A stretch of DNA of 64,000 bases from Paragordius varius (Eukaryota; Animalia; Nematomorpha): positions 12,462,001 through 12,526,000 of the forward strand of contig OZ176050.1 in the NCBI GenBank assembly GCA_964247055.1. Reading direction: 5' to 3'. Position 1 is the stretch's first letter. Each line of letters starts with the position of its first letter. The notes beneath the pieces were generated by a model. The model searched no databases. It saw only the letters and a program-made list of their open reading frames with translations, and had not been told where the DNA came from. Below, piece by piece: positions 3,001-34,900 of this stretch. The translations under genes and the position numbers were made by a program.

Positions 3001-4632
3001 CTAAGGTCTAATAATTGGACGGACCCCCTGGTCAAGCCTTTCATAGCAATAAAAAATGAAATTGAGGATGCATACGGTCTATTATTTGTGGGAGATCGGG
3101 TAATAATCCCGAACAAAATTAAGCCAGATATTTTAAGATACCTGCATAGTGGCCATCCGGGAATACAAGCCATGAAACTATTAAGCCGTGAAAAGGTTTA
3201 TTGGCCCGGGTTGAGCCAAGATATCGATAAATGGGTGCGTAGTTGCCAAAATTGTCAAAGGCTGCGCCCAAATGTACCCGAAAATCCCACCTATCAATGG
3301 AACGAGAATACAACCATATGGGAACGGCTCCACCTAGATATCGCTGGACCCATTGACAATTTATACTGGGTGGTACTAATTGATCATTGCACCCGCTGGG
3401 TGGAGGTAGAAACGTTACGTTCTGTGAATACCGGTAATATCCTTAAGTTTTTAGAAACCTGTTTTTGCCGGTATGGGTACCCAAAAGTGGTGGTTACTGA
3501 TAACGGCTCTTATTTTAAATCGGGGGAGTTTGAGAGAACTTTAGCTTCCTCTAATATAAAACACGTAACATCAGCTCCCTACCACCCCCGAACAAATGGG
3601 TTGGTAGAGAGGGTAATTTACACTCTAAAAACTCATTATTCAATGTCAACCCCACTTTCCGCAGACCTTTCCGCAGACCCAGTACGAAGATTAAACCAAA
3701 TCTTATGGGCTTACCGAAACACGCATCACAGTTCTACGAAGGAGACTCCCGCGCATTTGTTTTTAAAAAGAACTATGCAAAGCCCATTAACATGGATGAA
3801 AACGAAACCCAACGAATTCATGGATACTCCCGACATTCCGCAGGAGTTTGAAAAGGGGCAAAAAGTATATATCAAGAATGAATTGTGTTCTGGTTGGAGG
3901 GAGGGACAAATCGTCGACAGAACGGGATGGTTATCGTACAATGTCAACGACAATGGCAAAATCATCCGCAAACATGCTGATCAATTAAGGAATCGCATGG
4001 ATTGGTCGGTCGAAGGAGAAGAAAGGAGAAATGAGGAAAAGACTAAAAACTTAAACAACAACTTAAACAACAATGATAATAACAGTGAGGAAAAGACTAA
4101 AACCTTAACCAACAACTTAAACAACAATGATAATAACCTCCGAAAACATCCCACGGAACATGAAATAAGAACCCCTGAAAACATCCAGGAGAATCCGGAA
4201 TCAGAAAGTGCGCCTTCAAGTGAGAATACTCCTGTGCAAAAAAGTGACACTTCTCCTACCACAACTCGCCGGTACCCGATTAGATCCCGAAAGCCACCCG
4301 ACCGATATCAAGCTTAAGGAAGAAGGTATGTTAAAAGGGTTATCATCATACGCAAATTATCCTTCTCTTTTTTAGTGCATAATACACTTTGGTCCTTGTT
4401 ACGTTAAAAATATATATTACCTTGGTTGTGAATGCAAATTATTTTATTTATACTTATTATCTTTAACAACGTTTAAACCACACAACTATCCTTGTGAATG
4501 CAATAACCAAATTTCCTAATGTATATAAGGAATCATTGTAACACACAGAACACATTATATTATATTATTCGATTTTGATGTTATACTAAATAAATAAATA
4601 TATCCTTTATAATTTATATTAACTATTTGTCA
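11..4632 (+). mobile_element. Ty3/gypsy (Mag-like) LTR retrotransposon, full length, young, one nonsense codon in RT
   Basis: 304-bp LTRs at 11-314 and 4329-4632 (TG...CA, identical by eye). 5-bp TSD GTTAC at 6-10 and 4633-4637. PBS-like TGGCGCGGCT at 317. PPT AAGGAAGAAGG before the 3' LTR. Domain order gag-PR-RT-RH-IN. Confidence 0.97.
337..4317 (+). pseudogene. gag-pol polyprotein of LTR element 1, interrupted by in-frame TAA at 2020-2022
   Basis: Two Cys/His knuckles (CTKCGTTHTLGHC, CYRCHRSNHFARC), protease DTGA, RT continuing in the same frame as MDE*LKDCAGTAVYLDDV, RNase H (ETDAS, TDHKPL), integrase HSGH...CQNC and DDE core, C-terminal RRYPIRSRKPPDRY. Confidence 0.93.
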
Positions 4633-6182: not shown

Positions 6183-6763
6183 ATGTTACGAATACTCACC
6201 ACGCTTGTTATTTTTACCATCGTGGCAGTTTTTGGACAAGGTAAAGTCATCCTTTAATTTTAGATAATAAGGTATGTATTGAACCACAGTTTAAATACAA
6301 AGTTTATACCCCTTCTGATGGCAGTATATTGGCAAAACCAGTTTTTATCAGTGATTTTATCGTAAAATGCAAAAATGGATTGAGAGTAATGAATTATCTA
6401 TTTGAAGGATTTAAATTTTATTGCGCTTGTGGGCGATAATAATTTAAAGCAAATTGCAAAATCTTTGGATGGAACACGTTATGAAATTAGTATAATATCG
6501 GATGAAAAGATGAATTCTGCTACTACAATTAAAATATTTTATGCTGATGATTTTACCATTTTAAAAACGGCCATTGATAATAAAAAACCTATAAACATTA
6601 AACCATTACACACGATTGATTACAAACCAAAAGTTTATTAAAATAATAAATTTAGGCCTTATTCCGTGGATTTACAGTTAAACCCCAATTGATAGGGATA
6701 GCTATATCTGCCATATTATTTTATTTTGCGTACACCACAAAATGTAAAATTGTTCAGTCATGA
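6183..6763 (+). CDS. SSR4: Translocon-associated protein subunit delta (TRAP-delta), 170 aa, 4 exons: 6183-6240, 6264-6385, 6408-6632, 6656-6763
   Basis: Removing three GT-AG introns (23, 22, 23 nt) gives one 513-nt ORF: signal peptide MLRILTTLVIFTIVAVFG, C-x-EP, YTPSD, FISDFIVKCKNG, RYEIS, KPLHTI, C-terminal TM LIGIAISAILFYFAYTTK. This matches the TRAP-delta pattern and length. The ORF track shows only exon 3. Confidence 0.9.
6241..6263 (+). other. 23-nt spliceosomal micro-intron (SSR4 intron 1, phase 1)
   Basis: GTAAAGTCATCCTTTAATTTTAG. Contains in-frame TAA. Removal joins the signal peptide to the mature domain. Confidence 0.88.
6386..6407 (+). other. 22-nt spliceosomal micro-intron (SSR4 intron 2, phase 0)
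   Basis: GTAATGAATTATCTATTTGAAG. Removal gives CKNGLR|DLNFIALV. Confidence 0.88.
6633..6655 (+). other. 23-nt spliceosomal micro-intron (SSR4 intron 3, phase 0)
   Basis: GTTTATTAAAATAATAAATTTAG. Contains in-frame TAA. Removal adds the TM exon. Confidence 0.88.
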
Positions 6764-28983: not shown

Positions 28984-31900
28984 ATGAAGAAGTCATCACC
29001 TCTCTTAACGGAAAATTCATCGTTATTTTACAGTAAGAATAGCAAAAATTCTGAAACAATCAACTTTAAAAACTCAAATATGAACCATGATGATGATATT
29101 AACATTAACCAATCTTCACCTGATTTTAATCGTAAAAGAATATTAGTAGAGCGCAATACTAATGTTACACCACCATCATACTCGGAAGTACCACAAAATT
29201 TCCTGGTTGGAGATTGTAAAATTCGCAGAATGGGATTATTTCCAAAACACAAGGTAAATTTTTATGCCTAGTTTTATATATGTTAGAATTATTTGCTGTG
29301 ATTAGATGTTTTTATAAGTATTTATACGATAAATTTTTTAACATTTCTATGTAAGTTATAACCTTAACTTGCTTAAAATTAAAGTAAATATTGATATTAA
29401 AAACCCAATATTGTATTGTTACCTTTTTTGTTGTCATCATTGTTTTTACAACATTAAATATCCAATTTTTCGTTTTACCAACTATGCGCTTTCTTTATAA
29501 CGACTCTTTACTAACAAGTAATAATATTGACTCAATCGATTTCTCAATTCACTCATAAGGAAATTTGAGAAAATACTGTGTATAATTTAAACTAGAAAAA
29601 GCGATCTAAAATTCACTTATGAAACCTTAATTAATTTCTTACTATGCACGAACTAAAAATCTATTAACACTCCATGTATATGGTCTAACGATTTGAAATA
29701 TCTTAAAAATAAGGTATTAAGCCGAATTTAAAAATATGCCTTCTTTAGTCTTTTAGGCGCATTATACAAAAGAAATTTTTTCAAAAATGTAAAACTGTAA
29801 AAAATTCTCATCTCATACCTTTTTCCCGCCATTTGTTTCTTTATAATTTTTAAATCGCAATGCAATATGCAAATTTGATGTGCAATATAATCAGAAATGT
29901 AAATAATTAATTAAACAGTTATCAGGCTACATTTTACCAGCAAAAACTTGATATATTTAGATTTTAATATCAGCTGGTCTCGATCGTGTTTTGGAGCTGT
30001 CCCAATTTTAGACTCTAGGAGTCATAAAACTGTAAAAAATGCAAGCTTTTTTATCTAATACATAAGAAATGTTTGATAATTAAGTTTTAACTGAAAATAT
30101 CTCCGAGAAAGGGAATATAAAAATTACTAACTCTACGACCAAGGACAATTTTAGTCCAATTTCACATGAATATAATTTTTGAATTATATTTTATTTTTTT
30201 AGCAAATAACAGCATGAGATAGCCGTTGTTTTGCTTTCGTTCTACGTATTTGCCAATCGCCTTTTCTGCTTACCATAATAAAAATATTTAACAGAAAAAG
30301 CATTAGGTGTTTTTGTTATACCATTACATCTATTATTATTATTATTATCAATGTTGTTATAAGGTACATGAAAACAAAGTTGTTTTTTTCTCTCAAAACA
30401 TATACATACATTTTTTGACATGTATCTTCCAAAAAAACTGAACAAAAACACCTTAACGCTAAAACATATTATCTTTTATATCTATAATCTGCTTTGGAAT
30501 TATTAGCTAATGTTTAAATTGTACACTAAGGTTTAATATGTGTTTGGAGTTGACGTTAAACAATAGCATTTTGTACATTATAAGAAATATTTTAAGTATT
30601 TATTGTTATGTCATCCCTTATAATACATGTATAACTATAACGAAAAAAACCGCACTGTAATTTTATTTTATATTATGTATGAATTGACAAATTATTCATT
30701 ATTATAACCCCTAAAGCTATAATATTAATATTATAATAAGTTTAAAAATGACAATAAGCACACATTAAAGTTTGACAATTAGATACCTTATTATACGATA
30801 TAATGTTATAAGAAATAATTTACAACTTTTTTTGTTAAACGTTTATATGTTTATATATATTTTGTTTTTCAATAAAAAAGCCCTCTAATGATCATTAACG
30901 TCAACAAAATTTTGTTAAAACTAAATAAATTTACACTACGTTGTAACTTTCATAATGTATTGCGTTATTTGGGTCAAAATGTGGGTCTTAAAATTTTATT
31001 TTGGATATTTTCAATAATTTGCATTTAATAAATCATATTTTTTTTAAAAAAATATTTTTAGCATTTTTTATGTTTCAAAACTATTTTAAATTATACAGTA
31101 ACATAAACAAATGTATATTATAAATTTTTTTATGAAAAGTTAAAAAAAAGAAAAGAATAGCACATGGTTAAAAAATTGTGTAAGTAGAAACAACAGAAAA
31201 CATTTATTAAGGGTCGTACATGGTGTAATTACTAGAAAAAAATGTGTTTTTTTACTAAATTTGAAAAAAACAAGATGTATGGTAATTTTCCTATGAGTTA
31301 TTTTTTATACTGCCACACTAGATTGAACTAAAAAATTTATATAAATATTTAAATTTAACTTAAACAGTGTATGGCAAACAATTGAAATACATTTTTTCGC
31401 TTGCTTAATTGATTTAACACTAATTTTTATGCCATTTCTTCTTCTAGTTACTAAATTATAAAACAATGTTTAGTAAAATGTTTATGTTTTAGGTTTATGT
31501 AATAATGGGAGATATAAACAATCAATAAGTAAGGGTAAAAATGTTAATTTATTAATAATTACACGAGTAAATCACAAAATATCAATCATAACACGGTGCA
31601 AAACATATTTGGAACAATATTGCCGTATAATGACGTTAAGTGAGGAAAACAAAAATTTCAAAAAAAACCATGTTTATAATTGTTTTCATTATCCAATTTT
31701 TTTTTCAAAAGTGCTACGTTTAACAAAATTGATTTAGAAAATTCAAAATATTTCTTTAACGACTTTGTTTTGCGTTCCTCACACAAGCGCCTTATTCGGC
31801 AATATTGTTCTAAATTTGTTTTGCACCGTGGTGCTTTGTTATAATGATGTTTTATTTCATGAAAAAAACATTCTATTGGATTTAATTGGGGGGAGTAGGG

Positions 31901-34900
31901 AGGTAAAAACACCAACCTATCCCTTAGGTTTCCAAGCACCGACGCCTTGTGAATCGGTGCGTTATCACAAACAATATACGATTCCTGGGGTAACATAGAC
32001 AACGTTTCTTCCAAAAAATTTTTAAACGAGTCCCCCTTAAAGGAACCCGTTTTGATGTCAAAATTTATGACACCATCACATCCTATCATACATAGGAGTG
32101 ATACATTTTGTCCTATATAATATATTTTCATTATACCTCTTTGGAACCCCTCCACAACCGGAAACTGACCGGATGGGGCATATCCATAAATATTCTTTGG
32201 TTGAAGGGAAAATCCCGCTTCATCCAAGAAGAATATCTTTTCATCGGGTTTGAGGCGCATTCGAAGCGCATAATCATATCTTTTTTGTATAACCTCAAAA
32301 GAATTTCTCTCTCTCGGTTCCAAAATACACCTTTTACGGGTGATTTTCAATTTTTTTAAAATTTTGCGTATTGTTGGTTTCGAAACTTTAAGGGAATCCG
32401 GTAATTGTGAAATTACCTCATCAAACGTAATTTCGCAAGAGTTTTTGTATATCTTTTCAACCAGTTCAATCAAAGCTGGATTATCCAGCTTTGATTTCCT
32501 TCCTGTTTTTTGGGGTTTCGTTTCGATGCCCAAAACCATCTCTCGCCTAAATTTGTTGATGGCTGGAATAGACATATCCAATTTATCAACAAATTCCCGA
32601 GATGGTTTTTCGTTTTCAAATGGATTCGAAAATATTTTGTATGCCTTTTTAATTTTCTCTTCTGTCCAAAAATGATAATCTTTATATTAAAGAGAAATAT
32701 ACTTCTTTTAACTGGAATATCATTACTAGGAGTTTCATCTGCTACCGTATTATTTAAAATACCTGAAAATTATAAAAAAAATAACCCAAGGAGTCGTTAT
32801 ATGAATCTTGAGGACCATCATTAGCATTTGAGCAAACACTAAAATTTGATTCTTCTGAAATTAGGTTATAATCATTATTATGATTGCTGATATCCTCACA
32901 GAAATCATAAATATTGGGTTCATGAATAGTTGGTTCTAGATCTTAACATTGATTATAATTATGTACCCTGTGCTATAACTGAATCAGGAAGAATTGCTGG
33001 TGAAGGTGGGCTTTCATTATTATCAAGATTGTCCAATACGTTAATTCCTTGTAAAATACTATCCATTTTATAAGTAGGATATTTTTGCAAAAATATAAAA
33101 AATAACTCATAGGAAAATTACCATACATCTTGTTTTTTTCAAATTTAGTAAAAAAACACATTTTTTTCTAGTAATTACACCATGTACGACCCTTAATAAA
33201 TGTTTTCTGTTGTTTCTACTTACACAATTTTTTAACCATGTGCTATTCTTTTCTTTTTTTTAACTTTTCATAAAAAAATTTATAATATACATTTGTTTAT
33301 TATACTGTATTTTATAAAAATATTAACATTGGATTTACCTTTTTAAATTTTATGTACAATATGCTTTTTAGATATAAAAATTTAATTTTTTTAACGAAAA
33401 ACTTATATTTTGCCAATTATATCATAATAATAATGACCGTTTGAAAAATCTGGACATTAACTAATGGTTGATTTTTTGCCATCAACCTATAACATTTTCT
33501 TGTATTTTATAAACAAATTTATTTAAATTTATATCTAATTTACCAACCAGAACATAAGCATATAAATTATTATCTATAATTTTTTAATTGGATAATTTTG
33601 TTCAAATTTTTCATATTATTTTAAGCTTTATCATCGATTGCAACTTGACTTTATTTTAGGTTATGTCTTGGTTTTATTATTATACCAATATAAAATACAT
33701 ACTACCTAAATTTTAAACTATGCTTAAATTATCATCAAATAGTTTTTCCCTTTTATACAATAGAAAATGCGAGAAAGACTCTTCATTTTGTGGGAACATT
33801 GTAAGGCACCGTACGATCAATCTAAATTAGAATATTATGAAATATCATCAACCAAAAAGCGGAATTGGATCCAGGCATCACCCTTATTTAAAGCACTTTA
33901 TGAACATTCTCGAAAACATAATTACACGGATAGTAGTGACCAACATCACAAATCATCTGGTTCTTTGATACCTAACTCTTCTTCCATGACATTGAATGAT
34001 ACATCAGATTCTAATGCAATAGAAAAATCGCATACCTTTTCACACAATGGAGGAATCATAAATATGCCAAGGATCAAACGAACATTCTCTCACAGATTAA
34101 TGGGTAAATAAAATTTGCCATATAAAATGGCGATTTTGTATGAGGTTAAAAGTCAGACGATAATTTATTACACTAATAGAAATCAAACATATAGTTTTTA
34201 TATTATAATGTATAAAGTGTATAAAAAATTTAAACTATGTGATTTTTTGTTTTTACCAGTTACATTTTTGAAGATTTTTGAGAAAAATTACAGTTTTCAA
34301 TTAAATATGTACCAATAAAATACAAAATCTCATACATGGCAACAGACCTTAGTTAAATGCCCTCTTAGCCATTTCAAATATGACTTACATACTGTATTGC
34401 ATTTAGAAACATTAAATTATAAATTGTATATATTAAATTTTTTCCCTAAACAGTTACAAATATAATATATCGTCTAAATATATTTAGCCAAAAAATCCGA
34501 TGTGAAATCATCTCCCAATTTACCGAGTTCTCACACCATAGCAGACCCACAACACGGATTAGATTTTATTTGTGAAGACAATTTTGTTAATAAGGATCAT
34601 CATAATCCTGATGGGATTAGTAAGCCTTTAAGTCAATTGAACATAAATCTAGTCTCAGTTCCTTTGAATATTGGTGAAAATCGGGATTTAGCTTCTCAAT
34701 ACATGTCATTTTACCAACAAAACATCAATCATTCAAAACTTAAACCGAAACGCACAATTTTCCTCTGTGATTGTTTTAACATAGGCCCGGCCCAGATGAA
34801 TGCTGAACATCCATACTCACTTGCACAGTGGGCTAACAAAAATTTTGGGTATAATGTGCCTAACGGCCCTAATTTTACTACCAAGCAAAATAATGTCTCT

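Follow-up and report, generated by a model that had tools for sequence, protein, structure and literature searches.

A Tc1/IS630-type transposon of Paragordius varius whose transposase gene probably contains four ultra-short introns

A stretch of 64,000 nucleotides (nt) from the nematomorph Paragordius varius (contig OZ176050.1 of assembly GCA_964247055.1, positions 12,462,001 to 12,526,000 of the forward strand; hereafter, the window) carries on its minus strand a complete Tc1/IS630-type DNA transposon, referred to here as family A. The best explanation for this element is that it is a recently active, probably autonomous member of the IS630/Tc1/mariner group, and that four genuine spliceosomal introns of ultra-short size split its transposase gene. 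We consider this explanation likely, with transcription, splicing and activity deduced from genomic sequence. The most informative evidence is comparative: intron positions and phases recur in independently inserted copies and in sister families whose synonymous sites are saturated.

Under this explanation, transcription would start from the 5' repeat region, and the host spliceosome would remove four GT-AG introns of 25, 23, 23, and 24 nt. The product would be a protein of 437 residues, composed of an acidic N-terminal extension of about 105 residues (exons 1 to 3) followed by helix-turn-helix helices and a DDE core (exons 4 and 5). For this protein, the 214-nt terminal repeats would be binding sites, the CAGT ends the points of cleavage, and TA the target of insertion. 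The introns would have been gained inside an element clade that has long resided in this animal lineage.

Architecture of the element and its gene

The element and its gene, as read under this explanation, comprise the following features, with positions given in the window.

31096-33307, minus strand: whole Tc1/IS630-type transposon (family A), 2212 bp, with ends CAGT...ACTG (read directly and from copies)
31094-31095, no strand: TA target-site duplication on the element's 3' side (direct reading)
33308-33309, no strand: TA target-site duplication on the element's 5' side (direct reading)
33094-33307, minus strand: 5' terminal inverted repeat, 214 nt, 99% complementary to 31096-31309
31096-31309, minus strand: 3' terminal inverted repeat, 214 nt, partner of 33094-33307
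32967-33066, minus strand: exon 1, 100 nt, with ATG at 33066; begins an acidic, Asn/Ser-rich N-terminal extension
32942-32966, minus strand: intron 1, 25 nt, GT-AG, phase 1; GT and AG preserved in the 80% identical copy L004
32786-32941, minus strand: exon 2, 156 nt, open for 52 codons
32763-32785, minus strand: intron 2, 23 nt, GT-AG, phase 1, T-rich
32703-32762, minus strand: exon 3, 60 nt, with a basic patch at its end
32680-32702, minus strand: intron 3, 23 nt, GT-AG, phase 1, four codons ahead of the conserved Trp of the first helix
32137-32679, minus strand: exon 4, 543 nt; predicted DNA-binding helices and first D of the catalytic triad (Pfam DDE_3)
32113-32136, minus strand: intron 4, 24 nt, GT-AG, phase 1; in frame and stop-free
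31658-32112, minus strand: exon 5, 455 nt including TGA; second D and E of the triad (Pfam DDE_3)
31310-31657, minus strand: 3' untranslated part, within which 31592-31654 repeats part of exon 5 (31768-31830) in inverted orientation

A first-pass annotation, made from the letters of the window, had proposed these four phase-1 segments and a frame of about 437 residues that starts just inside the terminal repeat, and both proposals hold. All four segments are found on the minus strand with the lengths and boundaries listed, and once they are removed the joined frame spans 1314 nt, that is, 437 codons and a stop, with no internal stops. The frame starts with an ATG at 33066, 28 nt inward of where the 214-nt repeat ends. 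The GT...AG ends, together with a single open frame after removal, correspond to U2-type introns, and the same is true of two further copies, L002 and L003. Introns 1 to 3 are needed because the DNA-binding part opens at the start of exon 4 without any ATG. We judge the four segments to be very probably real introns, which the host would splice.

The long open frame matches Pfam DDE_3 (PF13358) with 76.8 bits (cut-off, 28.6), and exon 5 alone scores 59.9 bits. The catalytic triad is complete and is spaced D-77-D-30-E, where numbers count the residues between. The exon 4 region aligns with the N-terminal parts of relatives, some of which have helix-turn-helix families, and Pfam returned no match for exons 1, 2, or 4 when these were searched singly. 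A search of PDB found only a marginal match to Sleeping Beauty (E = 0.03), and a word-based protein search gave three weak matches only. The TA duplication, the terminal inverted repeats, and a DDE_3-type transposase with a full triad place the element in the IS630/Tc1/mariner group. It does not belong to the Tc1 family in the strict sense (DD34E), as 30 residues, not 34, separate the second D from the E.

Conservation among copies of the element

Two more full copies of family A occur on other contigs of the 110.6-Mb genome and are 99.4% and 98.4% identical to the copy in the window. All three have TA on both sides and differing flanks beyond, so they represent separate insertions and not segmental copies. 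The spliced frame is intact in all three. The genome also contains older copies at 74% to 84% identity and several fragments that consist of repeat only. The ATG context of exon 1 is preserved in the 80% and 74% identical copies.

Insertions and deletions that distinguish the three young copies occur only at a repeat edge, in the 3' untranslated part, and as one extra T within intron 2 of L002, so that intron 2 has the only one inside the gene. The resulting 24-nt intron 2 leaves the frame of L002 unaffected because the segment is removed; if the segment were coding, the extra T would be a frameshift. In comparison with L004, all insertions and deletions in exons 1 and 2 are multiples of three, and L004 retains the internal GT and AG pairs. 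From intron 1 of the decayed copy L013, 19 nt are deleted, which is not a precise intron loss.

Other differences and repeats were observed within the element. In copy L003 (G000:C5), 15 differences from the other two copies are clustered within 41 nt of exon 5 (element positions 1301-1341), and this cluster looks like a short conversion tract from another subfamily. The 3' untranslated part and exon 5 share a 63-nt inverted repeat (31592-31654 versus 31768-31830), which is 83% complementary with a 39-nt core at 92%; it may be a remnant of an inverted-repeat extension. Two 16-nt direct repeats, 75% alike and 56 nt apart, lie inside the 5' terminal repeat (33179-33194 and 33235-33250). By analogy with inverted repeat-direct repeat (IR-DR) elements, these may be putative transposase-binding sites, the match between them being weak.

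Conservation among sister families

Seven further families, B to H, were found by a protein search of the genome with exon 5. The element of family C is 1964 bp long with 215-nt repeats, and exactly one long-frame model is available when up to four introns of 20 to 30 nt are allowed. The introns in this model measure 26, 24, 23, and 22 nt, each in phase 1, and the model encodes 395 residues. It is found in 7 of 10 copies examined, five of which have the full 395 residues, with two stopping earlier (394 and 384). Exon 4 of family C is 543 nt, exactly as in family A. In copy L037 the introns occupy 720-745, 824-847, 911-933, and 1477-1498 of the reverse strand, and the frame requires the removal of each.

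The fourth intron is supported by both frame and protein alignment. In families B and C the frame differs across the fourth site, and a 22-nt segment must be removed to keep it; other subfamilies have segments of 21 to 22 nt at this site, and families D and H have no extra bases there. In family A, the eight residues that the segment would encode are an insertion, absent from all 40 outside relatives aligned and from families D, E, F, and G. When these eight residues are removed, a conserved motif (a basic residue, then G-x-N-x-S) is restored.

The place and phase of intron 3 are common to families A, B, and C (22 to 23 nt), four codons before the conserved Trp and in phase 1. In family G, an intron of 23 nt, also in phase 1, sits one codon nearer to this Trp, and families D and F have an AG acceptor at the A-C location, although a search for their upstream exons did not find any. 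Outside relatives have a single open reading frame (ORF) through the intron 3 site, with a Met from a few to about 50 residues upstream. Among paralogues, intron sequence and length drift, the length by amounts that are not multiples of three, while position and phase are kept: the fourth site has 24, 22, 22, and 21 nt, and the third has 23, 22, 23, and 23 nt. Family C shares introns 1 and 2 with family A in their number, order, and phase at the least. In family B, the 5' part falls within a tandem repeat and is therefore ambiguous. Mariner-type elements (PF01359) were sought in the genome as an intron-free comparison, and only decayed fragments were found.

Selection has acted on the core of the protein. 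Pairwise comparisons of families A, B, and C give proportions of synonymous differences (pS) of 0.69 to 0.86, which is saturated, and of nonsynonymous differences (pN) of 0.21 to 0.33. Relative to L004, third codon positions account for 42 of 67 changes in exon 4 and for 51 of 89 in exon 5. The core has therefore long been under purifying selection while the segments were present, which implies that the segments are removed from the message. The first-pass annotation had suggested comparing intron presence across copies and relatives, and this comparison bears it out: the introns are shared by diverged copies and sister families, and introns 3 and 4 are absent outside.

Several sister families have unusual arrangements. 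Family B (L034 and L035 on G000:C4, 40 kb apart, and L036 on C9) lacks terminal repeats, and a tandem array with a period of about 162 nt stands ahead of it. Two sites share an identical segment of at least 3 kb that includes the family, yet its exon 4 and exon 5 frames are open; the family may have been immobilised or co-opted. In families D and E, copies of the same transposase ORF are paired on opposite strands, about 1.8 to 3.4 kb apart, in a palindromic arrangement (L061 at G000:C11:1381000-1389600, L065, and L062). A family C copy, L037, has a perfect 71-nt direct repeat on both sides (L037:1106-1176 and 3136-3206), which is unusual for an element that duplicates TA, and the copy may have inserted into a repeat.

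Origin of the clade and of its introns

An exhaustive HMMER search of 1.8 billion representatives detected thousands of outside relatives of the transposase, none of which is closer than 37% to 43% identity. Ten of these were looked up; they have 288 to 348 residues, and one, a firefly protein, is named. A quick maximum-likelihood tree was made from the eight families of this genome and 76 outside proteins (matches up to P0089 with at least 280 residues; shorter ones were excluded), and the codon split by intron 4 in families A, B, and C was written as X. Families A, B, C, D, F, G, and H form one clade with a Shimodaira-Hasegawa-like approximate likelihood ratio test (SH-aLRT) value of 99, and no outside sequence falls inside it. 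Within this clade, families A, B, and C group together (SH-aLRT 98), and family E is placed elsewhere in the tree. The single clade and the saturated synonymous sites indicate long residence and diversification within the lineage and not a recent arrival.

Two further roles had been proposed for the element, that it arrived recently by horizontal transfer from another lineage with micro-introns, or that it is a vehicle seeding such introns into host genes. The three copies are young (98.4% to 99.4% identical), and transposons that create introns do exist (PMC9860276, PMC12130899). Also, a sequencing run under a different species label contains 71% of the element's words at low depth, along with single-copy flanks. 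However, this run may be a host sample containing this organism, or may come from a close relative. The distance to the best outside representative and the grouping of seven diverged families in one clade do not fit a recent transfer, and the phylogeny suggested as the test of transfer thus speaks against it. The vehicle proposal fares no better when the genome is searched with the intron sequences. Those of introns 1 and 3 occur only in the three family A copies, and that of intron 4 occurs in family copies and at two sites with two mismatches, whereas matches to the T-rich intron 2 are about as frequent as those to its reversed control. For the same reason, that near-identical intron copies are absent from unrelated genes, the introns are not introner-like elements. 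Both proposals are therefore very unlikely.

The proposal that a DNA transposon has acquired introns of the host's size class stands up well. Introns 3 and 4 are acquired, since outside relatives do not have them, and these are the only two introns for which outside sequences are comparable. More generally, because transposase genes start intron-free, each intron is a clear gain. The distribution of introns among families fits a history in which intron 3, the oldest, was gained first and intron 4 was gained later, by the common ancestor of A, B, and C. Near its N-terminus, the separate lineage E has a candidate 22-nt intron of its own, and the frame of family H breaks at other positions; gains may thus be recurrent. 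A tentative extension, which we hold to be possible but short of probable, is that the clade is a dated record of how ultra-short introns continue to be gained de novo, with intron 3 at its base, the fourth in the A/B/C ancestor, other positions in family H, and a candidate in the unrelated family E. Perhaps such introns lock elements to hosts that splice introns of less than 30 nt and so bar their horizontal spread.

Alternative gene models

Several observations weigh against the four-intron gene. Intron 4 is not required by the sequence alone, because it is in frame and stop-free. Exons 1 to 3 have no excess of third-position changes relative to L004 and match no protein family, so the case that they are coding is built on their open frames, the lengths of indels, and the shuffles. 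Among sequencing runs recorded as RNA, none contains the element. The four runs that best contain it are DNA, with depth that is even over introns and intergenic DNA and about two to six times higher over the element, and their contigs cross the introns unspliced, with no short joints. In this AT-rich DNA a GT often has an AG 20 to 30 nt away, and when the 5' region was dinucleotide-shuffled, a short path of some kind led to exon 4 in 29% of cases. With every intron in phase 1 and the lengths of exons 2 and 3 divisible by three, skipping these exons or using one longer intron would keep the frame. Finally, the tree comes from a quick search and has long branches.

One alternative is that the gene is a dead pseudogene, in which the segments are post-insertion insertions or frameshifting indels that happen to be bounded by GT and AG. 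Both the frequency of such pairs and the RNA result would suit this idea. However, the positions of the segments are identical in three independent insertions and in the copies at 74% to 84% identity, the same sites and phases recur across families with saturated divergence, the length of exon 4 is exact, and the core has been under purifying selection. These comparative data contradict the prospect, raised by the first-pass annotation, that intact relatives would reveal post-insertion indels, and we regard a pseudogene as extremely improbable.

A second alternative is that the gene has fewer, longer introns. Exon 1 might be joined to exon 4 through a 287-nt intron (32966-32680), or exons 2 and/or 3 might be skipped, in which case exons 2 and 3 would be mostly noncoding or alternative. 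The frame would survive, as noted, and exons 1 to 3 neither show a codon-position bias relative to L004 nor can be aligned in sequence with family C. The host genome also offers precedent for both size classes. A TRAP-delta-like gene elsewhere in the window (6183-6763), with a Pfam E value of 5e-5 on one exon that is just under the cut-off, is readable only with several GT-AG introns of 22 to 23 nt, and its need for them indicates that the ultra-short class exists in ordinary genes. The gaps between exons of actin genes (G000:C2:5809830-5811066 and C5:4294960-4296473) are about 60 to 110 nt, and so ultra-short and conventional introns coexist.

Chance tests and comparisons nevertheless argue against longer introns. 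When exons 1 and 4 were fixed, the DNA between them was shuffled 1000 times, and a path through at most three micro-introns was sought, such a path appeared in just 7 shuffles for family A and 25 for family C. Of 500 dinucleotide shuffles of the 5' region, none gave an upstream coding path of at least 300 nt. The path finder is too permissive with loose limits, under which it reports 304 models for the TRAP-delta-like gene and 363 for family H, and it was therefore used with tight limits and together with shuffles. The comparative evidence is stronger support for the introns than the shuffles are: relative to L004, the indels in exons 1 and 2 come only in multiples of three, that copy retains the internal GT and AG, and the number, order, and phase of introns are identical in family C. 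Longer introns are consequently unlikely, if less so than the alternatives above. Under the preferred four-intron gene, exons 1 to 3 probably encode a poorly constrained, acidic, disordered extension that ends in a basic patch. The N-terminal leaders of outside relatives are very variable in length.

Relation to known transposons and short introns

A transposon must use a type of intron that its host can splice, and introns are known in several transposase genes, including those of P and Ac. Tc3 of C. elegans and Minos of Drosophila hydei are Tc1/mariner-type elements with long terminal repeats and a single intron of ordinary size. The element described here resembles them in its long terminal repeats and in relying on the host to remove an intron, and differs in its four introns, all of less than 26 nt, and in its N-terminal extension of about 105 residues. 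The activity of the P element of Drosophila depends on host splicing, and regulated, tissue-specific intron retention is established for it. Family A would likewise be a DNA transposon that relies on host splicing of its transposase pre-mRNA.

A close published parallel is the TLEWI group of Tc1-like elements in pteriomorph bivalves, whose transposase genes have two to five GT-AG spliceosomal introns (bioRxiv 10.1101/656579). TLEWI copies share their exon-intron structure, and stepwise gain was proposed; these elements have no terminal repeats, have a DD36E triad, are restricted to bivalves, and are suspected to be domesticated (bioRxiv 10.1101/656579). Both cases involve IS630/Tc1/mariner transposase genes with several GT-AG introns. 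However, the element of P. varius has 214-nt repeats, TA duplications, young copies, a D-E spacing of 30 residues, and, in its clade, introns of 21 to 26 nt. Its terminal repeats and spacing exclude it from TLEWI. CACTA elements also have introns in their transposase genes (PMC4158355). Because transposase introns are already known, what is presented here is new in degree: a complete, multi-copy Tc1-type element with four introns in the range of 21 to 26 nt, within a clade that shows stepwise gain.

Introns of less than 30 bp are documented in myxobolid myxozoans and Dicyema japonicum; their medians are 22 to 27 bp, their signals have shrunk to GTa...AG, and A residues occur shortly before the AG (PMC13644364). 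The introns of the element and of the TRAP-delta-like gene look alike and share the size class and signals of these introns. The abstract and results of that study deal with host genes and make no mention of transposon genes (PMC13644364), and the P. varius genome differs further in that introns of about 60 to 110 nt coexist with the short ones. Another link between mobile DNA and intron gain is provided by introners, which are transposons that become introns (PMC9860276, PMC12130899). In contrast, the introns in question interrupt the gene of the transposon that carries them. That transposon, at 2.2 kb, is no micro-intron, and the search did not find the intron sequences beyond the family.

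Routine ORF finding and automated annotation would label this element and its sister families as broken pseudogenes. When read with micro-introns, they are intact and probably still mobile, which changes the estimate of active transposons for this genome. Also, because the family tree orders the gains, the clade constitutes a natural series for studying the origin and recognition of introns of 21 to 26 nt. One prediction is that the genomic copy will be inactive in ordinary animal cells, and that an intron-free cDNA will be active.

The host locus

Two further features define the surroundings of the element in the window.

28984-29271, plus strand: upstream coding-like ORF of a host gene
33764-34111, plus strand: downstream coding-like ORF of a host gene, preceded by an AG acceptor at 33762-33763

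The first-pass annotation had placed the element antisense within a 4.5-kb intron of IRS. The location of the element between two plus-strand ORFs, and antisense to them, is consistent with an intron of about 4.5 kb, and this part of the claim can be retained. The identification of the flanking ORFs as IRS was not confirmed by searches of Pfam, PDB, or Atlas.

Two observations concern the DNA between these ORFs. Just outside the element, contigs of two runs from one sample have about 22 other letters in place of 118 nt (30920-31039), which indicates a polymorphic indel. Farther upstream in the same host intron, positions 29547-30143 reach a word depth of up to about 250 times that of the flanks in four DNA runs, with many internal joints; this segment is a very high-copy repeat or satellite.

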